64,000 bases of DNA from Pelomyxa schiedti (GCA_020536535.1 JAHLWZ010000825.1:1-64000); one strand, 5' to 3'. Numbered from the stretch's first letter, positions 49,103 to 61,791 are shown. Program-made: numbers and translations. The notes: generated by a model from the letters alone, not told the origin.

Positions 49103-50095
49103 ATGGCATCGAAAGCAATTAAACTGGTCATGCTTGGAGGCTGCGGTGTCGGAAAAAGTGCGTGTTGTTATTTTTTCTTTCGGTTTTGTTGTTGTCAACA
49201 CTGACCTCACCCACAGGTGCTATAACGATCAGGTTGGTTTGTTGTTTTTTGTTGTGTTGTTTACGTATTTATTGCGACCAGGTTCGTCCAAGATCGCTTC
49301 GAAACTGATTATACACCAGTATCCTAATTCGATCCTCCTTTTTTGTACTAACTCTTCACCACTTCCACTTTGTTGTGCCCCCATAAACAAGTCTATAGAG
49401 GTATTCCATTCAGAATTGTTATTTTTTCTTAAAATAGCCCATAGAATTCCTTCCAGCGGACCCTTGCTGTTGATGGTTCCAACCATCTTCTTGAAATTTT
49501 AGACACTGCCGGAACAGAACAATTCGTCAGTAATGTTCTACATATCATTGAAACGTTTGCTAATATATATTATAATAACAGCTATGCGAGAGTTATACAT
49601 TAGAACTGGACAAGGGTAGGCATAACAACACAAAATTACCTCACTTTTCTCATTAACTCAACCCAAACCTCTGCACAAATACCTCAGGTTTATACTTGTG
49701 TACGCCATAAACCTTAAGCCATCATTTCTTGCCTTGACGGACATCATCAACCAAATTAAGACACAGAAACCAAAAGATGAAGATCGCCATTTGATGATAG
49801 TCGGAAATAAATGCGACCTCGAGGATAGAGTCATTCCAACATCTGTATGAGGATTCATGTAAATTGTTTTGTTTAAAAACTAAAACAGGATGGTGAAGCG
49901 CTAGCCAAAGCCAATAACGCAAGATTTTTGTATGTACCAAAACTTTTTTTTTTTACATAGCGCAATAACAAGCTATTTGTCAGTGAGGCCAGTGCTCGTA
50001 CAAAGCATAACGTTGTGGAGGCTTTCACACAAATCGTGAGGGATATCCTTTCTCACTCAGCACCAAAAAAGAAACGGTTTTGCACATTACTGTAA
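49103..50095 (+). CDS. Rap-like Ras-family small GTPase (8 exons including 16-nt and 9-nt microexons)
   Basis: KLVMLGGCGVGKS, DYTP|SIE|NSF, LEILDTAGTEQF (Rap signature), VGNKCDL, EASAR, C-terminal KKKRFCTLL* (CaaL). Confidence 0.92.
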
Positions 50096-50325: not shown

Positions 50326-51236
50326 ATGAGTTGTTGTGGCAGCAATTGTTGCACACCCCAGTCTGCAGCCCCTGCTGCACCCAAATCGAGCAGTTGTTGT
50401 GCTTCAACATCTAGCTGCTCATCATCGGCCTCGTCTTCCTCGTGCTGCGGTGCTTCAGCGTCTGGGGGTTGCTGTCCTGCAAAAAAGGCTCTCAAGATGT
50501 CACTCGTTTTTATACTCACTGGACTTGTTGGGTATAGAGGAAACTCAACCAATATTAATCGCGGTGACACCACGGCAATAACTCAAAAACAACAAATATT
50601 TGGGCGCTATTAACTCACTCAATGATAGAATGGCTACATCTTTCGTTGTGAGTCACAGGCACGAACATATGTTTCCGGATCTTCATAGTGAGATGTTCAA
50701 TACAAATATCTTCAGGCCTATGACGGACTCCCGAATGGCGTATATGTGCATACATCCATTGTATGACGCCCTCCATCACCCTGCTTTGCGATTTATTTTT
50801 TTTTTCTCGTATTTATGTTCACGTTCTAAATGTCATACTCCCATCATTTGCAGTGTAACCGCAATTATTTCTATGCTGTTGACACGCAAAGTATCTAAGC
50901 AACCCCTACACGCCACTATGTTCTGGGCCCTTCTAAACCTTCCAGGTAAATTGAAGCAAAGCTCACACATCGAGCGACATTCTCATTCCTACAATCTTTC
51001 GTTTCAGGAATGCTTATGACATACTGTTGCTTTAACCTTTCAGGAAAACTTGTTGCTTCATGGTTCATTTCTGGCATCATTCTCATTTTCGGTAAGAATG
51101 AGCCGCCCAAACAAACAAAAACTCACTACCAAATGCAGCACAAACTGGAACTATAAGTTTGTTACGCAGCCTCTTATGTGGAGGCAACTGTGGAGGTTCA
51201 TGTGGCAGTGCTCCTGAGCATCCCAAAAAGAATTAA
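50326..51236 (+). CDS. 4-TM membrane protein with metallothionein-like Cys-Cys-rich N-terminus and Cys-rich tail
   Basis: Four exons read in phase: MSCCGSNCC..GGCCPAKK, TM SLVFILTGLVG|, HSEMFNTNIFRPMTDSRMAYMCIHP|FVTAII..LLNLP|GMLMTYCCF..SWFISG|..CGGNCGGSC. Confidence 0.7.
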
Positions 51237-51433
51237 ACACCAGTTGGAGGTTGTTTCAATAAAGAAAATAATTTTTTTATTTTTTTTGCTACTTTGCTAG
51301 TCTCACACACTTCCACTATCTTCTTTATGCTTGTGTTTGTGTTTGTGTTCCTTCTTGTTTGCTTCCCCATTGATAGTCTCCTATTAAGCATTTTAATCAG
51401 CGTGGTTTTTTAAAAAGAAAGGAGGGTGTGGTG

Positions 51434-54400
51434 TTACGACTGAAATGATCGTACCAAGTAGTCTGAAAGTGCTATTGCTGCTGGAACATAGTACTCATCC
51501 GGTACTTGAATTATCTCTATCTCTCCATCTACTGGGGCACACAAATCGTCATAAAACCTATATGGGTGGCTCAGCTTTCCTTAAAGTGAAAAAAGTCATA
51601 CTTTTTGAGAAGCTTTGAGTTACTCTGTAGGAACTCATTAAACTTCATCATGAATTCTTCCTTGTTTCCAAATTCAACTCCATTGGCTAAACTCTGTAGC
51701 ACCTTTGAAATGACAACCATCTGTCTTCGCAGATTTTCGGGTGGGGGTTTGGGAAGCAACCCATAACTTGAAGTGCATGTAAATCAAAACGCATTGGTAT
51801 AAGATACACACGTCTCTGGTACAAGAATTGCAGTGTTATAGAATCGAAGGAATACAAAGGCACCAAGGGATTGCATGTCATAATTAGGAATCTTGGGTTG
51901 AATCTCAGAGCGAATGTGACCACAAATCCTCTTCAGGGAAAGTGGAACGTTGTTTGCAGAACGTGTAATTTGAACTAAGAACTTGGTGCACATTAGCTCC
52001 ACGCCAATTGCGTTAAGTCCTTCATCCACATCCTCACTCATATTTAGGGGATTGACCTGATCCAATATTATCTCCAGGAGTTAACATAAACTTACACACC
52101 TCGTAGTCAGTTGTGACAAGGGCAACAGAGGCTGATTCCCCACTTTCTTGCTCCTGGTTAAGGTTAATCGCAGGAAATTTGGGCATTGATATGTTGCGGA
52201 CAAAACTGTACCTCTCTATCCATTTGCTCTTGCAGGATATTTTCAAACAAAACAGCAAGGGTTTGGAAGAGGTAAGGAAGTCCAACCATTTTGGAGTAAA
52301 ACTGAGGAAGCATCAGAAACAGCGGTAGCAGTTAAAGAGAGGGCAACCTTGAAAGCCTTTGTTGCATGACTATTAGAGCGGAAAAGGGTTGTTGGGTCAT
52401 CTGGGATAGACTGTAATTCCAAAGAGATTAGATGCATTATCTATGTACTGGAATGAGAAGATAAATCTTTTTTGGAGATGGATGAATCACCATATCGGCA
52501 GCCTTGCTGTGTCGCTCATAGAAGTAGACAAGAGCTTTACAGACATTCTCTGACTCGGTTACTCCAGTTTGAGATATGATTGTATCCGCAGTGGTCCAGA
52601 CATTTTGTTCTGCCTCTTGGATCTTTTCAGTGTTAGGATTACAGTATCTATCGCAATTTGTACAAGTATTTTTTCTATCTCTGCAACTTTGAGGTTTGAT
52701 GTTTCTGTGTCGTACATAGATAGCACTTGTACATCAGTGAACCTGTGATAAGGTTAGAAAAAGCCAGCTAGTGTTTCTAATCGACATTTTTTTCCACAAC
52801 TCGGATGACCGCAGACGTAGTCTTGAGGCTCTTCTTTTCCTTTGTAGTACTAGACCAAACAAAGCAATTAAAGGAAAAACGCATGCTAGGATGCCAAGGA
52901 GCCCTAAGAGCTCGAGGTGATTACTTTTGGCTAGTTCTCAGTTGGTACAAAGTGACTACTGGAAAGAAAAAGACCTTCTGAGTGACTGTCTTGTTCCTCA
53001 CACGTCGGACCGTGCCAGTGGAGGAAGCATAAGCAATAGACTGTACCATTTGAGTACATTGTGCAAGAGCCCTTGTCACATTTGATGGCAGAGCACGGGC
53101 TTCGGGGCAGTCATCACATAAAAGAAAAGAAAGAGAGCACGTACTCATGTGCCGTGGAGAATGTGGATGAGGTTGAAAGGGTATTTTCAAAACCATTGGA
53201 TATAACAAGGAACCAGAGGTAAGATGTATCAGAGTTGACTTGTAGAGAAAGTGACGTTTTATCAGGGAGAGCTGTTTCATTATGGCAAACTTCCCATGTG
53301 GAATTGGCAGTTTTGTTTACTAAGGAATTAAAGTGAAAAAAAAAAAGAAAAAAAAAAAAGAAAGAAAGTATTACCTTGATTTAGCACAATCAATTGGAAG
53401 GAATATATATAGCCACTTGTGGGTGGGCAGATGTGTCCCCAGAAAGTTGTATTGCTCCACCGGAAATTGACCAACCCGTAGGAGACATTACTTATATTTA
53501 CAGGATAAACTAGGGCGGGGGGTAACGGGAAAGAATGCTCGCAAGAAATAAAACGAAGATAGTCTGTTGTTGACTGCATTTGATCCTAATTGAAGGTAAG
53601 ATTTAGAACAAACAGGAGGATTTGAACTGTATTTGTTACTCGGACCCGCCAGAAGTATCTGTTCAAGTTTAATATCCACTTGACTTACAAACATATTATA
53701 CCTGGAGTCCATTGTCCAATCAGACGTATTGAACTGGATGGAATTTGGCAGTGTACCATCATCAATGATGGTATCAGTGGGGATTAAAGGCCAGGCAGCA
53801 GTATTGTCTGTCACAAAGAGCTTATAGGTACGAGGAACAAGAGTCTGGCATTCTGTGCCCCAATTGCTAAGAGATGTAATGAACAACTGCGTGGTAAGAG
53901 GCACAATGGCACCCTCTAAAGGAGAAGTGAGGGCAGGATAGCCCGGAAACTTAGCAATGCACACTAGGAAACGTGAGCAAATGAGGAGATAGGGATTGAA
54001 GTACCAGAGAAGTAAAAGTGTGTTGAGGCAGCAGAGTCAAGGTCTCCATTAGACGAAGTCATCCACCATTCATAGGATCCTTGTAAGCCATTTAGGTGAA
54101 AAGAAATAAAATGAATTTTGTACCTTCTGTGAGAGTTACACTAGTCTGTGTAACACTTAACTCGGAAGTAAGAGACCAAGTGTTGGGTATTTTTTGTATG
54201 GTAAACGTCATTACATTTGTTTGTGCCTTGAAACAACTGAAGCCGTAGTCCGGTTCCGTCCAGTTGAATGAAACTGTTAGCTGAGAGAGACTGCTGCCAG
54301 AGGTAGGGAAAGATGGGATTGGGGGATCTGGGAAAATAGCTTTGCACAGATAAAACGTCCTTGTGAGAGAAAAAACCTGCAATAATGTATTGTCAAAGGC

Positions 54401-57400
54401 GCAGGGGGAATTGGTGACTATACTCTTTGCTCAGTGTTATTTACTTCCACATTCCAGCTCCATGTTCCCGGACTGAGGTGAACAAGGCCAGCATCGCTCT
54501 GCATTTGAGGAAAAACACTGTAACTGTTCCCCAAGGGGTATGCCGTATAGGAGGTAGTAGCGTTGAAAACGTGAAGGGTAATAAGGCATGACTTCACTTC
54601 AGGGCACGTTGTTCCACAAGACGGAGAGGTCCAAGAAAGATCAACAGATTCATTTTCATTGAAATTGACCTCCTCCCCGTCTGGCGGACTTGCAGGATTT
54701 GGTGCAGCTGGGTTCATTCTAACACACGTAGAAAATAATCCAAAAGGTGTTGGAGAAAAAACTGCCCCATTGAAGTATGTTACACCCCAGGAATAATGTC
54801 CAGCTGAAGTGGAGAGGATGGTTGTTGGATAGGATGTAGTATTGACAGACAGGGTCTCATTAAGAACGGTTTCTCGAGAGTTCGTGTCATAGACAGACAA
54901 AATTATGAAATTCGTGATATTGGATTCACAGTTATTTCCAAGTGCTGGTGGTCCCCAGTAAAAGTACACCTGATCGAATAGAATAACAGCTCCTTCTGAT
55001 GGGTATATCAAATCTGCACTATCCACAAGAACATCTGGGACACAGTACGTGAAATTTGTTTTTGCTTTACTGGAACATGTTCCTGAAGTACAAGCTGCAA
55101 CCGAAACCAAATTGGTGATCCCTGCAGATACCGTGGTTTTAAAGGAAGATGTACTAGAATCGATAGTGTGAGGCAAGTCATTGATCACCAATAGATAGTT
55201 GGAGCTTTGGTGGCAAGCCTCCCCCCAAGAACTTGGTGGGTCCCATTCCAACATAACTGGATTGCTCCGCAACAGACCAGACGGCGACAGATTTCGAGGC
55301 ATACTTGGCTCGGTAATAGTGCATGTAGAGAAGAACTTGCTATCTGAGGTTGAATTCAAAACCCCATTGTTCGCAATTACTCTCCAAATCCACTTTGCCG
55401 GTTGGAAGATTCCGGAAAAAGTTTTACTGGATCCCAGGTGAGTTTCTATCCATAAACTAGTGCTATCATTATGAAACTGGAGTATAAACTCTTTTAGATT
55501 TGTAGTATTGCACGTTTTTCCAAATGACTTGTAGTTGTCTCCCCATGAAAGAGAGACTTGAGTAGTGAGGAAAAAGGAGCTATTGCTTGGAGAGCTTAGT
55601 ACTGGTACATCCGGTGCTGTATTATTGCACACAGGCACTATGGGTTGGCTATTGTTTGCTGTGACATTCAGGACAACAGTAGAATTAACTTGGACAGTTT
55701 GGTTCACAGGTACAGTAGTATTGACAGTAACGGTTTTGTTGACTATAACTGTTTGATTCACAGCAACTGTCTGGTTTACAACAACAGTTTGATTGACCGT
55801 AATTGTTTTATTGACTGACACAGTTTGGTTGACACTCACAGTTTGGTTGGTGAGAGCTGTAATATTCACTGTTATCGTCTTGTTGACTGGAACAGTTACA
55901 TTTACCGTAGATATCTCTGTAACAGTGCAATTGATATCTACTGTGGTATTTGCAACACAAAAAACTGTCACAGAAGAGCCTGAACTGCAATTGACTGTTT
56001 TTGTGCCGTTGGACGTGCAGTTTATGTGAAGTGTTTCATTCACATACACTGTAGTGATATTCTTTGTCAGAGTTGTATTGACAGTAACTGTTTGATTGAC
56101 AGATACTGTGGCGTTAACTGCAATTGTCTGGTTCACCACTTGTGTTTGGTTCACTACCTGAGTCTTATTTACAGAAATAGTTTGATTCACGTTGACAGTC
56201 TGGTTGACTACATGTGTTTCATTAACAATAACAGTTTGATTTGTAGTCACAGTTTGATTGACAATAACTGTTTGGTTGACTGTTACAGTAACTGTGGAAT
56301 TGGCTATGGGCGCAACATACAGCCTTTCTACTGTCGAGAAGCTGCTGCGGCTACTGAAGCCATTGCCGATAAGCACATACCACTCTGCCACTCCAACATT
56401 GAGTGTTACCACTAAGGAACCATTGGTCGAGGCATTTTGTAGTGCCACAGTGCCATTAAAGAAAACAGTGATATTACACAGGGTAGTACCACAGGCTTCC
56501 CCACAAGAGGTAATTGTCCACTGTAAAGAAACATTACTTTCTTTTGTTTGGAAAGAAGAGTCAGGCAGAAGTGTTGGGTAGTCTGGTGCTGACTGTTGAC
56601 AGATACTGACGGTTTGCATTGGTGACACGGGGTTGTGAATTGAATTTTGCACACTCAGAGCCCAGTAAAGAGTACCAGTAGACAAGCCCGTGGGGAAATA
56701 GGAAGTGGTGCTGAAGTTAGAAATAGAGTGCCAAATAGAGGAGTCATTATATGAGCTGAGATCATTGGAGTACCACAAAAGTAGAGCTTGAGGTTTTCCA
56801 GTTTCACAATTAAAACCAAAATCCACCTTTTGCCAGTACAGTGTCGTAAGGCCTAGAATGTATATCTGTCCAGTGAGTGGAGATACCAGAGTGGGTGATA
56901 ACTCAGGTTGGCAAATACAGACGGTGAAGTGCCGTACTTCTGTGGATTTTGCTAGCACTGTATTATTGGCTACCACCCACCAGGTGTAATTTCCTTGCCC
57001 AAGTGCTAAAGATACCTTGTTGTCAACAGTTCTTGTGACGAATTGGCCATCAATATACAGTGTGTAAGTACCATCTAATTGCATTTAAAGAGTTGTTTAG
57101 AGAGAGAGAGATTTACTTGTTCCTGGACAACTTTTTCCCATATTCGTTTTCATCCAAGACAAGGTGATATTAGTCCTTGTGGCGTCTTTCACAGAGTACA
57201 ACATGTTGTCTATTGGTAAATCCAATGTAAAGTCCCAAGGAGCTGTTGGGGTACAGAAAGTCATGACCCAACTTTGTGAAGACTTTGTGAAGTTCATATT
57301 ATTGGCACTGATGTACCAATTATAGTCACCATCAGGAAGTGTCACATTATGCCTGTACCATGGAACCCGAATTTGTGTGGCCACTTTAGTTGGTGAAGCT

Positions 57401-59434
57401 GCCGTCGAGTACAGGTACACATCGAAGTAGTGATCGTTTGGCACATTGAGATTAAAACCTTTTCCTTTTTTTTAACAAAAAGGGGGTGGGGTAGCATATT
57501 CCGTGTTTACCTGATTGCTTGCATAAAAAATATTTGGTATTTTCACATGCAGTAACATTCCAAGGAACTGCATTTGCTGTAGCATACACACAATCATTGG
57601 CACCGTTATTGCCAGAAGTTCCTGGGAAACCCGGGGGACTATACGTAGAACGTGATCCATCCTGCCACACAAAAGTATTTTCCACGCTTTAAAAGCATTG
57701 GTAATGAAAGCAAAAAAAGTTTTAGGTCGAAAGATATACACGATATCATCGAGTCCAATCCAAATATTACTGCTGGTACCCCATTTTGACAGAACATATG
57801 AGGCTTCCTCACTCGACTCAAAGGAAGCCAGAGAAATGTCTGGCGAAATCGCACGACACGCAGAAGAGGCTGCGGAATAAGTTCTAGAAGGAGTGGATAG
57901 GGATGTAGAAAGCTTATAGCAAGATACAGGATATGAGGAGTTCGGCCAGCATGTCGTGAATCCAGCTGGGGATTGATTGCCTTTTGAATGTAAACAAAGA
58001 GGCTAAATTGGAGCTGAGTTACTTGAAAATAAACCCCATTGCAATAGTGGTGGGTTTGAGGGTCGGTAAGCATTGCTGGGAGGGGATATGTGAAGTGGAG
58101 TATTTGGGTATTGTGGAGAGGTTACAACAAAAGTGAATTGGACAGACGTATTAGAAGCCTGGACATCACGTTTTGCAACTGCAGTGACATTCTTTTATCA
58201 AAAAAGTTAGATAACAGAATTGTTGAGAGTGCTCACCCATGTACAGGTGCCATCAAAGGTAAGACTGATGGTATAGGAGGTTGTATTCACATCTTTTTGT
58301 ACTTTGGAAGTAGATGTACTCGACCCAATGCATGTGTAAGCCACGGTGTATGTGACTGTGGTGTCAGGACATGAACTGCCACTGGAGACTACACCCCAGG
58401 ATAGTTGTGTGGCTCGAGTCTACCAAATAATTATTGGAAAAAAGGTGGTACTAGAAGTAGGACAGCTCACAAAAACAATGGCGTTATTGGAAGGGTACAC
58501 CAATTGAGGGGCATTTGGAGGTGCAAGTAGGCAAAAAGTTTGTGCTGCCTCATATGGTGAAATGGCCTTTGCTGAACAGCGGTAGAAGGCATAGATTGTG
58601 TCCCACTTGTGGCCGCCCCAACAACCTGGAGCGTGGTAAGAACACGACTGAACGTTGTGACACTGCCCCCACATGTCCCCAGTCAGAGGACCGCAATATT
58701 CTTTGTAACGTATGTAAGGAGGACAAAAAAAAAATTCAGCTGGGGAAATACTCCAGTCTGTGTGCACTGCACAGTCGGTACAACTATACCACTGTCCCCA
58801 AGCGTTCTCGAGGTCAATCATAGTGGTCCCAGCAGGACAAGCAACAGTAATGGTAGGGTTCCAGGCGTTAAGTGAACCCCAGCGCATGCAGGTCATCCTT
58901 TTGTTTGTTGGGTTGGAGAAACACGAGACAAAGGCAGTACCTCCTCATTGGCATAGGCGAAGATCTCCAGTAGTAGAAGCCTGGCCCCAAACTTTTTGCT
59001 GTACATTCGTCAGTGAAATCTTATAAGAAAGTCTAAAAAGGAATCGCACTAAGGTTGTGAGCCCCAATGGATATCGACACTGTAATACCAGACGCAACTA
59101 TAGACGCAGCCGTAAAGGAACTAGTATTGCTCACTTCAATGAAGAACTGAGCCAATTTGGTCAAGTCAGTGGTGTCGTACTGGCACGCTGTAGTGAATCC
59201 CTGGTAGTTCACAGAGAATGTCACATTGGCCTTCGCCGTCCTGCTGGCCAGCACATTCGGTTTCAATATCGTGGTTTGAGTGTATCCACCACAAGAAGTG
59301 CAGTTAACGTCGCATTGTGTGGCACCTCCAGAGCAACCCCCAACTAGGAAGAAAAGAACCGCCAACGCCGCAACCGCTACCAACCGACGCAACGTTCGGA
59401 TTTCCGTATGTACGGGATTCACGTTCAACGTCAT
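51434..59434 (-). CDS. Giant single-pass receptor: signal peptide, FN3-like repeats, C-type lectin, N-glycosylated stalk, EGF, TM and cytoplasmic RasGAP domain
   Basis: Signal peptide at 59434; CTL 57515-57951; FN3-like xYxWxVxxxNG repeats; EGF exon 52975-53099; TM LLGLLGILACVFPLIALFGLVL-QRKRR; in-phase introns 52743-52800 and 52623-52663 lead into RasGAP (TTLFRSNS, GAFVFLRF, SKVLQSLANGVEFGNKE). Confidence 0.72.
55645..56305 (-). repeat. Coding hexapeptide repeat (V-x-V-N-x-T)n
   Basis: About 35 N-x-T/S sequons counted in about 220 residues of ORF 54418-57084. Confidence 0.9.
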
Positions 59435-59681
59435 GGTGAGCTTGGCCGGTCGTGTGTTTGGCTTCGATGGCGCGTTTTGGCTTTTGTTTTGTCGGGGTCT
59501 TTCGTGGATGTTTTGTTGGTTTTCCGATTATCTGAATCTTCTTCCCCAGATCTATCAACTTTAACCCAAATCAACGAACAAGTCGGTTATCAAAGACCTG
59601 CTTTTCGAGATTGTCACAGTGCTTCACAAAAAAGGTATTCAAGTAGAAGTTGTACCGGGAGCAGTGCTGTAAAAAACCCGA

Positions 59682-59955
59682 CCATCGGGGATTTTCCCCG
59701 ATGGGAGGTTTTTGGGAGGGGAGGGGAGAATTCGGGGAGAATGATTCCCTCAGTCTTTTTGATCATCAATCCCCAGTCTGCCCGTTTCTCAGCACTGACT
59801 TCTTATCAAAAGAATCAAGAACAATTTCGGGAACGATCAAACGGCTGAGTCAGACAGAGCCTGGTAGTAGATCTCCCAAATCACTCCCAAAATTCTCCCA
59901 AACCCTCCCATCGGGGAACTCTCCCAAAACACTCCCCGGGGGCATTTCCCAAATG
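59682..59955. repeat. Hairpin plus inverted-repeat and G-run cluster in the divergent intergenic region
   Basis: Perfect 10-bp stem ccatcgggga-ttt-tccccgatgg at 59682-59704. ttccccgatgggagg (59694-59708) is the reverse complement of 59904-59918. Repeated ctcccaaa units. Confidence 0.75.
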
Positions 59956-60096
59956 GGAGAAAACAGCACTGGACCGGGAGTGCGTGAGGATCACTCTCAT
60001 CATCAGAAACTCCCAGTGGAGAGCAGCGTGCGACATTTGAATCACCGAAAGCATTGGTTCTCTTCCTTCTCACAGAAAATTCACATTCGTGGAACA

Positions 60097-61791
60097 ATGC
60101 ACCGCGGCACCGTGGAGCGCCACCGCGTGGTTGTTATTGTGGGAGCGACTGGCACAGGCAAGTCCAAGCTCGCTGTGCATATCGCACGGCGTGTGGGTGG
60201 CGAAATTATCAACGCCGACGCCATGCAGACCCACCGCGGCCTCGATGTGATCACCAACAAGCCCCTATCCTCCGAGATGCACGGAGTTCCCCACCACTTG
60301 TTCTCGGTCGTCGACGACTTTGCCGAGCCCCCCCCTGGTGACACCTCGACGAAGCCTCCCAGTGCGGCGACGACTGGCCCAGCAAAGACCGACATTATGG
60401 GAGGAGGTAGCCACGCCGACGTCCGGTGGTGGGTTGGGGAGGCACGACGGCTCGTGGCCGAGATCGAAGGAAGGGGACACGTTCCCATAATTGTTGGCGG
60501 ATCGCACTACTACGTGTACTCTCTGTTGTGGGGTGAACTCATCGCCGACCCGGACGGAAACGGCAATCCTGAGACTGGAACTGCAACCCCAAACAGGATC
60601 GAGAGCGAGATATCGACAGAGAGCGAGGCTGAACGCCGGTTGAAAATCGAGAACGCGGAAATGATACGCGCGGCGCTGCAGAATTTGGAAGCGGAAAAGA
60701 ATTCCGCGAAGGACGGTGCAGGCGGAGCGTCACCGTTGGTAAAGCAGCAGTTGTTCGATGTGCTGTCGCGTGTGGATCCAGCAATGGCGCAGAAGTGGCA
60801 CATAAACGAGACGAGGAAGATTGTGCGGTGCTTGAACTTTTATCTTCAGAACGGGAGGCCGTACAGCCAGGCGGCTGCAGAGAAGAGAGTCTGTGAAAGT
60901 AAACCTGAGTATGAACCGTGTTTACTGTGGGTCGACTGCGACCTGAAGGAGCTAAGCGCTAAGCTCTACCAGCGCGTCGATGAAATGATTGGAATGGGGG
61001 CCGTAGAGGAAGTCGCCGAGCTGCGGAAAAAAGTGATGAGTATATTTCCCGAGAGTGATGTGGTCAAAGGCCCGGAAGGACAACTACCACCAAGACTCTT
61101 TGAATTAGGGTTAATGCAATCTATAGGCGCTCAAGAACTCTGGGAAAGCTGCCTCAACCCTAGGCTCCCAAGTGGTGACTACTCACCGCTCCTGGAGCAA
61201 GGAATTTCCGAAATGAAAAAAAATACTGTAAGATATGTACACACGCAATTGCGATGGATTCGTAACAGGTTGATGCACAAGTCTGTTCTCTACCGGATTG
61301 ATGCAACTTGTTGTCTTCCAAGTGAAACACCCAAGCAACTTCATGCTTGGGAAGACTGCGTTGGAAACCCCGCCGTCGAAATAGTGGAAGAGTTTCTCAG
61401 AAGTGGCCCACATGCTGCGCTCCCGTCCACTCCAAACCCTGAAGAATCACTCACGACCACACCAACATCAACACTACAAACCCTCACTTCAGAACACTCC
61501 ACCAACAGTTGTTCCTCTTCAAATATCTCAGTCACCACAACTCCAAGCACCACAGAGACTCAGCAACCACAGCTGCGAGAAGGACAACACCCCATTCAAC
61601 ACTCCGTTTCAATCACACAGCTCACAGTTCCCACACAGACTGAGTGGAAAAAACACTTGTGTGAGGTCTGTGGTGTGACAGTCAATGGGCCACACGAATG
61701 GCAAGCACACATAGCGTCCAAGAAGCACAAGGCAACAAAAAGAAGGACTAACAAATTGGCGCTCCAAACCAAAAACAAAACCAAAGACTGA
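60097..61791 (+). CDS. TRIT1: tRNA dimethylallyltransferase (tRNA isopentenyltransferase), eukaryotic type
   Basis: VVVIVGATGTGKSKL, EIINADAMQ..GLDVITNK, VPHHL, PIIVGGSHYY, QSIG, QLRWIRNRL, C-terminal zinc finger CEVC..HIASKKH. Apparently intronless. Confidence 0.95.
   Translation: MHRGTVERHRVVVIVGATGTGKSKLAVHIARRVGGEIINADAMQTHRGLDVITNKPLSSEMHGVPHHLFSVVDDFAEPPPGDTSTKPPSAATTGPAKTDIMGGGSHADVRWWVGEARRLVAEIEGRGHVPIIVGGSHYYVYSLLWGELIADPDGNGNPETGTATPNRIESEISTESEAERRLKIENAEMIRAALQNLEAEKNSAKDGAGGASPLVKQQLFDVLSRVDPAMAQKWHINETRKIVRCLNFYLQNGRPYSQAAAEKRVCESKPEYEPCLLWVDCDLKELSAKLYQRVDEMIGMGAVEEVAELRKKVMSIFPESDVVKGPEGQLPPRLFELGLMQSIGAQELWESCLNPRLPSGDYSPLLEQGISEMKKNTVRYVHTQLRWIRNRLMHKSVLYRIDATCCLPSETPKQLHAWEDCVGNPAVEIVEEFLRSGPHAALPSTPNPEESLTTTPTSTLQTLTSEHSTNSCSSSNISVTTTPSTTETQQPQLREGQHPIQHSVSITQLTVPTQTEWKKHLCEVCGVTVNGPHEWQAHIASKKHKATKRRTNKLALQTKNKTKD

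Follow-up and report, generated by a model that had tools for sequence, protein, structure and literature searches.

A predicted single-pass receptor with an NF1-type RasGAP domain is encoded by one expressed gene of Pelomyxa schiedti

Introduction

Ras is usually switched off by soluble GTPase-activating proteins (GAPs) that need to be recruited to the membrane. NF1, yeast Ira, p120GAP and SynGAP are soluble and reach the membrane through adaptors or lipid-binding domains, and among well-known receptors, to our knowledge, only plexins have a GAP of their own. Plexins combine a Sema-PSI-IPT ectodomain with a Rap-directed GAP that is split by a Rho-GTPase-binding domain. C-type-lectin-like domains are found in the animal receptors DC-SIGN, CD209b and langerin, which are type II proteins that signal via adaptor motifs. 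The present analysis concerns a gene on the minus strand of a 64,000-nucleotide (nt) stretch of DNA from Pelomyxa schiedti (GCA_020536535.1, JAHLWZ010000825.1:1-64000; hereafter the window), for which an earlier note, made from the sequence, had proposed a receptor-type RasGAP, i.e., a lectin, FN3 and EGF ectodomain joined through one transmembrane helix to a RasGAP domain.

The predicted protein shares with NF1, Ira, p120GAP and SynGAP the catalytic domain, the FRxNS arginine finger, the FLR motif, the lysine of KxLQxxAN and an all-helical fold but differs from them in having a signal peptide, an ectodomain of approximately 1900 residues and a transmembrane helix, and in having no Sec14-PH, C2, SH2 or PH domain. 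With plexins it shares the logic of a type I single-pass receptor and a cytoplasmic GAP of RasGAP fold, and some members of its family, although not this protein, also share PSI and IPT/TIG stalks with plexins. In contrast with the plexin GAP, however, that of the present protein is of the PF00616 type without the Rho-GTPase-binding insert, and no match to Sema, PSI or IPT/TIG was obtained with Pfam on any exon of the gene. The C-type-lectin-like fold is shared with DC-SIGN, CD209b and langerin, as indicated by Pfam and PDB sequence matches, whereas the fused GAP is not. The same architecture and exon layout were noted at distinct loci in GenBank proteins of P. schiedti (P0001, P0150, P0151 and P0007) and Mastigamoeba balamuthi (P0004). 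One account, in which amoebozoan receptor GAPs are not mentioned, places the origin of plexins in the common ancestor of choanoflagellates and animals (PMC6374515). A literature search that left most subscription journals outside its reach yielded no description of a RasGAP that is a receptor or transmembrane protein and no study of the paralogues, in line with the earlier note, which knew of no characterisation of this architecture.

Results

Gene structure and transcript evidence

The coding region (51305..59434, minus strand) consists of 26 exons and 25 introns and holds 2309 codons in a frame that is open throughout, from the first ATG of the frame (59434-59432) to a stop codon at 51307-51305. 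Transcripts were examined in three public single-cell RNA sequencing runs (X1, X2 and X3) of one sample labelled 'protist metagenome', and their contigs were compared over positions 51400-57399 of the window with those of a further run from the same study (X4), which holds the whole stretch and, its kind being unrecorded, was taken as a DNA run. Seventeen junctions were read from RNA contigs, all of them GT..AG on the minus strand with introns of 41-74 nt: 15 were listed as joints, one more was evident from individual records in which 53319 is followed by 53375, and the last from a contig end left loose at 51454, the continuation of which lay at 51350-51379. Spliced forms of these junctions were absent from the contigs of X4. 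When the 17 junctions were joined, an uninterrupted frame was obtained that runs through a 2.65-kb exon, four FN3-like repeats, the EGF-like domain, the transmembrane segment and a linker exon of 79 nt before the seven exons of the RasGAP and, finally, the stop. The eight introns upstream of these (57400-59434; 42-69 nt) were predicted and checked by alignment with three paralogues, in which six of the eight junctions fell in strongly conserved gapless stretches and the first two in a less conserved yet alignable region. A minimal-intron search of the 5' third had yielded implausible introns of 78-95 nt, and these gave way to the introns of 42-69 nt, which agree with the alignment of paralogues. 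These findings indicate that what the open reading frames display as separate pieces is, as had been claimed, one expressed gene, the product of which is a type I single-pass membrane protein of 2309 residues; the earlier expectation of a single large receptor was thus borne out, with this exact length in place of the approximately 2000 residues then estimated.

The features of the gene are given below, with the basis for each in brackets.

59089..59434, minus strand: exon 1, N-terminal hydrophobic signal sequence (residues ~17-33) and start of the ectodomain (hydropathy; the QC..C..CGGY motif that follows aligns with paralogues)
59020-59088 and 58898-58940, minus strand: introns (prediction only)
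58471..59019, minus strand: exons 2-3, cysteine-rich region (residues ~116-284) of no family (no Pfam match; conserved in paralogues, e.g., YWWHAAPMPM)
57511..57980, minus strand: exons 6-7, C-type-lectin-like domain, split by a predicted 53-nt intron at 57687-57739 (Pfam Lectin_C)
54424..57074, minus strand: exon 9 (2651 nt), seven FN3-fold repeats and the NxT-rich insert (repeat hidden Markov model, AlphaFold model)
55618..56325, minus strand: NxT-rich insert, residues 905-1140 (sequence counts)
53145..54376, minus strand: exons 10-15, last four FN3-fold repeats (repeat hidden Markov model matches residues 1553-1872; all six introns RNA-supported)
52975..53099, minus strand: exon 16, membrane-proximal EGF-like domain (flanking introns 52931-52974 and 53100-53144 both in RNA)
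52786..52930, minus strand: exon 17, transmembrane helix (52845-52916, residues ~1921-1944) followed by the basic stop-transfer sequence QRKRRASRLRLR (hydropathy, RNA junctions)
52664..52742, minus strand: exon 18, juxtamembrane linker of 79 nt (spliced on both sides in RNA; gapless paralogue alignment)
51455..52622, minus strand: exons 19-25, NF1-type RasGAP domain, residues ~1996-2280 (Pfam, NF1 alignment; six internal introns all RNA-supported)
52378..52380, minus strand: codon of the arginine finger, R2055 in FRSNS (2054-2058) (direct sequence reading)
51844..51852, minus strand: FLR codons, F2182, L2183 and R2184 (direct sequence reading)
51305..51380, minus strand: last exon, short basic His/Lys-rich tail and stop (RNA contigs run from 51454 into 51350-51379)

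The earlier note had proposed an EGF exon at 52975-53099 and a 41-nt intron at 52623-52663, and both were exact in RNA contigs, the intron in X1 as well as X2. The donor of the transmembrane exon, for which the note had given a 58-nt intron (52743-52800) and an exon at 52801-52930, was found at 52785, with a 43-nt intron (52743-52785) and an exon at 52786-52930. Either donor would preserve the frame; RNA, however, shows only that at 52785, for which the alignment with paralogues has no gap. Similarly, the gene does not end near 51434, as had been supposed, since RNA splices 51455 to 51380 across a 74-nt intron (51381-51454) into a further exon with its stop at 51305-51307. The basic tail encoded there resembles the His-rich C-terminus of paralogue P0151. 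Across 52600-53100, the region that the note had singled out for RNA evidence, junctions were present on both sides of exon 52664-52742, and contigs from the transmembrane side and the GAP side abut at 52717/52718, within this exon, without a single contig that spans the whole. The 55-nt intron at 53320-53374 (minus strand) is almost pure T/C and was recognisable only via the RNA records that join 53319 to 53375.

The RNA contig ends at 52618, just inside the first GAP exon, and at 54587 carry the reverse complement of the SMART template-switch oligo (CCCATGTAC...). These 5' ends of complementary DNA (cDNA) are most likely sites of reverse transcriptase drop-off on a 7-kb mRNA, as indicated by the occurrence of the same oligo in mid-exon at 54587. 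An annotated product of this locus was not among the hits in either protein collection searched.

RasGAP domain

The GAP is continuous and approximately 285 residues long. Exon 51812-52056, the largest of the GAP exons, alone matched Pfam RasGAP (PF00616) at 39.5 bits (cut-off 28.3), and the spliced model scored 328 bits on the family hidden Markov model; paralogues scored 78-127 bits on PF00616. Neither a Pfam search with single exons nor a PDB sequence search gave a match for the 31-residue finger-loop exon, and the arginine finger was judged from the family alignment. In this alignment, the finger column, which is Arg in 33 of the 34 clade members, coincides with LFRGNS of vertebrate neurofibromin (P0183), while FLR (2182-2184) and K2216, invariant in all 34, align with FLRF and SKILQSIAN of NF1. 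The FRxNS finger and FLR, which the earlier note had called intact, were read directly in the translation together with the other motifs it had quoted, i.e., PCSAIKCDKGSC.., a hydrophobic 22-24-mer followed by QRKRR, TTLFRSNSHATK, GAFVFLRF and KVLQSLANG.

Similarity to NF1 was evident at several levels. Two consecutive exons aligned with consecutive parts of the NF1 GAP-related domain in a PDB sequence search, and the cytoplasmic part of the closest full-length relative had NF1 as its first match, with an E value of 6e-25, its FRxNS aligned to the NF1 finger loop. A profile built from 32 cytoplasmic domains gave an E value of 1.2e-41 against the GAP-related domain of vertebrate neurofibromin, whereas the same profile gave 0.0016 (probability 16%, hhalign) against plexin-D1. 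Whole-domain tests took paralogues P0001 and P0151 as proxies for the spliced protein. A cytoplasmic model was made for the nearest paralogue, P0151, the GAP of which is 60% identical to that of the present protein; this model (predicted local distance difference test score, pLDDT, 90.5) has the all-helical GAP fold, and its best matches in a fold search were NF1, p120GAP and SynGAP, with TM-scores of up to 0.91 by target, while plexin structures ranked 26th or lower at 8-12% identity. A search of the ESM Atlas returned 'RasGAP' only, and Pfam Plexin_cytopl was not matched in the relatives. A plexin-type GAP was rejected on account of the continuous domain, the plexin-D1 result and the weak fold matches of plexin structures. 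The contrast with plexins that the earlier note had drawn, in ectodomain and in GAP, held. Given the NF1-type profile and fold matches and the retention of the finger, FLR and lysine, the domain is a canonical, unsplit GAP of the NF1/p120 type and very probably catalytic.

Topology and ectodomain

By hydropathy, only two hydrophobic segments were noted in the protein, at residues 12-39 (signal) and 1919-1947 (transmembrane, peak 2.81, then QRKRR). N-glycosylation sequons numbered 79 in the ectodomain vs 1 in the cytoplasmic part, and cysteines 64 vs 4. The signal peptide, the single transmembrane helix with its positive-inside flank and the extracellular character of the N-terminal part are those of a type I surface protein, predicted to expose approximately 1900 cysteine-rich and heavily N-glycosylatable residues. 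The predicted order of domains is signal peptide, cysteine-rich region, C-type-lectin-like domain, 13 FN3-fold repeats, the NxT-rich insert, EGF, one transmembrane helix and NF1-type RasGAP.

Pfam Lectin_C matched two adjacent exons, one over profile positions 3-47 at 19 bits and the other over 52-107 at 28.5 bits (cut-off 22.6), and the continuation of the match from one exon to the next supports the intron predicted between them (57687-57739). Whole-domain matches in paralogues scored approximately 54 bits. In alignment with CD209b, however, the positions of the sugar-binding EPN and WND motifs are occupied by TSG and WNV, respectively. The canonical Ca2+/sugar site is thus not conserved, and the carbohydrate sensing proposed in the earlier note is unsupported.

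The repeat hidden Markov model found 13 copies of a unit of approximately 100 residues. For the unit at residues 1137-1244, an AlphaFold model made from an alignment of 82 units had a pLDDT of 93.7, and all 50 of the PDB matches listed for it were FN3 domains (TM-scores of 0.50-0.68 by model). Pfam fn3 itself matched none of the ectodomain exons, and outside Lectin_C and EGF the ectodomain gave no Pfam match; relative P0006 does match Pfam fn3 (38 bits). The EGF exon matched EGF_Teneurin at 20.1 bits, under the cut-off of 24.3, and an EGF domain occupies the same position in relatives. Thus, of the families that the note had expected from profile searches, Lectin_C and RasGAP were detected as such, EGF only below threshold and FN3 as a modelled fold rather than a Pfam match.

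V-N-x-T-V pentads make up the insert at residues 905-1140, the 236 residues of which hold 36 N-glycosylation sequons and, in the centre, a cluster of cysteines. The insert is also present in paralogues P0001 and P0150 and not in P0151 or P0007.

Relatives and phylogeny

When an 81-residue exon was searched against 1.84 billion representative proteins, 135 hits were returned, many of them to proteins 1400-2700 residues long that matched close to their C-terminal end. At least six paralogues of P. schiedti are in GenBank, of which P0001, P0150 and P0151 are the closest, with 43-44% identity over the aligned length. P0001 (KAH3746119) is colinear with the model over residues 27-2286 (44% identity) and P0150 over almost its whole length; identity was 38% for P0007 (KAH3757384) and 29% for P0004 (Mastigamoeba balamuthi m51a1_g8516). 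The P0001 gene, located by tblastn in GCA_020536535.1, resembles the present locus in that it spans 7.9 kb and has one 2.6-kb exon, small EGF and transmembrane exons and introns of approximately 45 nt. A 1668-nt Logan contig holds an uninterrupted 530-residue frame (P0002) that covers FN3, EGF, transmembrane segment and GAP of a paralogue. The names of these records are all automatic, e.g., 'GTPase-activator protein for Ras family GTPase'. The NCBI record of P0150 (2238 residues), which has Lectin_C and RasGAP, is named 'succinate dehydrogenase', an evident mis-annotation.

Outside Pelomyxa, named sources were Mastigamoeba balamuthi, Clastostelium recurvatum, Gocevia fonbrunei, Rigifila ramosa (CRuMs) and Thecamonas trahens, which we take to be an apusomonad; the search of other Amoebozoa suggested in the earlier note thus found relatives in Mastigamoeba, Clastostelium and Gocevia. 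The fused architecture was present in transcript-derived frames of Rigifila, Clastostelium and Gocevia, and the spacing from transmembrane segment to GAP was 45-85 residues in every relative with a transmembrane segment. A maximum-likelihood tree was built from 108 GAP domains, and in it 37 transmembrane-linked sequences and 8 fragments formed a clade (support 99/91) that included no sequence lacking a transmembrane segment. NF1/Ira sequences fell outside this clade, and the present protein fell in a five-member Pelomyxa group within it.

Ectodomains varied within the clade. Pelomyxa members have a lectin-like domain and FN3-fold repeats, with PSI alone in the P. schiedti paralogue P0153, while Gocevia and several environmental sequences have PSI and IPT/TIG, including TIG_plexin, Rigifila has FG-GAP, EGF and fn3, and Thecamonas gave a weak ConA-like match. 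The family thus keeps a module of EGF, transmembrane segment and GAP and exchanges ectodomains, and the transmembrane-linked RasGAP clade, with members in Amoebozoa, CRuMs and an apusomonad, is old. The suggestion that this receptor was assembled independently, as an isolated case, accordingly failed. Since paralogues are already in GenBank, the locus is one member of an uncharacterised family and not a unique invention.

Stalk domains of the PSI and IPT/TIG families with one transmembrane segment and a PF00616 RasGAP were noted in P0105 (Gocevia), P0153 (P. schiedti) and the environmental sequences P0135, P0152, P0169 and P0170, P0153 and P0169 each having only one of the two families. The PSI-IPT stalk of P0135, from a public run assembly, matched vertebrate plexin-D1 with E values of 1e-11 to 1e-12.

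Neighbouring genes

A multi-exon gene for a Ras/Rap-like GTPase lies at 49103-50095 (plus strand), convergent with the receptor gene and approximately 1.2 kb from its stop. In its P-loop, GGCGVGKS, Cys is found at the position equivalent to Gly12; in Ras, substitutions at this position block GAP-stimulated hydrolysis. Between the GTPase and receptor genes, a small cysteine-rich open reading frame (50327-50613, plus strand; MSCCGSNCC...CCAST...SSCCGAS..GGCCPAKK) was noted, the product of which may resemble a metallothionein or be a small peptide that is secreted or lipidated. On the other side, a divergent open reading frame of 713 codons (59650-61791, plus strand) begins approximately 200 nt from the receptor ATG. 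It encodes a P-loop (VVIVGATGTGKSKLAV) like that of tRNA isopentenyltransferases and, at the C-terminus, a motif resembling a zinc finger, and over it the G+C content jumps from ~0.42 to 0.54-0.60.

Discussion

The explanation that we favour, with a probability of roughly 0.8, is that the locus encodes an expressed type I receptor with an NF1-type RasGAP domain, a member of a family, in which local inactivation of Ras is set by the ectodomain. The GAP of such a receptor would always be kept on the cytoplasmic side of the plasma membrane, alongside the lipid-anchored GTPases of the Ras family, and would by this tethering locally extinguish the signalling of Ras and possibly of Rap. Where and when this happens would be set by the ectodomain, the binding of which to a surface, particle or cell may cause clustering or re-orientation of the GAP. 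Ligand-triggered switching and a role in the recognition of prey or symbionts, both put forward in the earlier note, are likewise conjectural. The cups that amoebae form in macropinocytosis and phagocytosis are defined by patches of active Ras, and in Dictyostelium their size is restricted by NF1; an NF1-like GAP tethered to a receptor would offer a direct means to shape such patches where contact is made.

Several points weigh against this explanation. The signal peptide was called from hydropathy alone, the eight upstream introns only from prediction and paralogue alignment and the cytoplasmic fold from a model of P0151 rather than of this protein; GAP activity is predicted, and its substrate and any ligand are putative. 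The TSG and WNV of the lectin-like domain also belong here. With regard to transcripts, all three RNA runs are of the same sample, the 52743-52785 junction was present in one run only (X2), with 23 nt on its short side, and the transmembrane and GAP exons were not bridged by any one contig. In addition, the GAP-side contig of X3 ends at 52618 with the template-switch oligo and has several times the depth of upstream exons, which could be the result of 3' bias and reverse transcriptase drop-off but may also reflect an extra internal start near 52618. An internal start of this kind is part of a different and, in our view, improbable account, according to which the locus has two products, an ectodomain protein that ends after the transmembrane segment through intron retention and a soluble RasGAP, with the fusion a minor form or an artefact of read-through. 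The cDNA end in X3, the lack of a bridging contig and a depth of GAP exons that was 2-8 times that of upstream exons in X1 and X3 would all fit such an account. This account is weakened, however, by the linker exon 52664-52742, which is spliced on both sides in X2 at near-equal depth (11.1 vs 9.3), by the template-switch oligo in mid-exon at 54587, by a frame that is kept through 25 introns and by the presence of the fusion in paralogues and in the transcript-derived frames of Rigifila, Clastostelium and Gocevia. Less credible still, and to us scarcely conceivable, is that the locus is a pseudogene in decay or a chimera of the assembly. Although DNA contigs of X4 break at the T-rich stretch 53326-53374, RNA contigs cross this stretch as a spliced intron, the 2309 codons contain no internal stop and colinear paralogues are present on other contigs.

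The remaining alternatives concern what the protein does. It is very unlikely that the cytoplasmic domain has lost its catalytic function and, like IQGAPs, serves as a scaffold to which Ras-GTP binds without its hydrolysis being stimulated. The Pro of FLRFxxPA is replaced by Thr in this protein (FLRFYNTA), which would fit such a scaffold, but Thr is common to 11 of 34 members at this position, the finger, FLR and lysine are present and nearly invariant in the clade, and IQGAP structures match far less well than those of NF1 or p120GAP. More serious, if on balance doubtful, is the alternative that the protein serves in adhesion or in the surface coat and tethers a GAP that is constitutively active, with an ectodomain that would only anchor and position this GAP, for example where the cell meets its substrate, and with no ligand switch. 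This alternative would account for a cytoplasmic part that is nearly all taken up, after the transmembrane helix, by ~50 residues and the GAP, with no regulatory insert or extra domain, for FN3-fold repeats and a glycan-rich insert that are typical of adhesion or stalk proteins and for a lectin-like domain without sugar-binding residues. On the other hand, lectin/FN3, PSI-IPT, FG-GAP and ConA-like ectodomains have been swapped while the GAP module was kept, the pattern expected if the ectodomain determines the specificity of input. The constitutive and ligand-switched forms of a tethered GAP differ only in regulation.

With regard to the favoured explanation, receptors with a canonical NF1-like GAP would represent a second and apparently older route, beside that of plexins, by which the cell exterior is coupled to inactivation of Ras. 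The organisms that have the family depend for their living on phagocytosis and macropinocytosis, two processes driven by Ras patches. The cytoplasmic domain of approximately 365 residues and point mutants of R2055 offer objects for test, and the gene model has been corrected at one locus of the genome. Members with PSI-IPT stalks bear on the assembly of plexins. We tentatively suggest, as a rather speculative extension, that these proteins are an ancient class of receptor that arose before the split of Amoebozoa, CRuMs and apusomonads, with a cassette of EGF, transmembrane segment and GAP to which swappable sensors were fitted, and that plexins could have come from the PSI-IPT members by addition of Sema and divergence of the GAP. 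If this is true, the origin of the plexin-style receptor GAP would move far below the common ancestor of choanoflagellates and animals.

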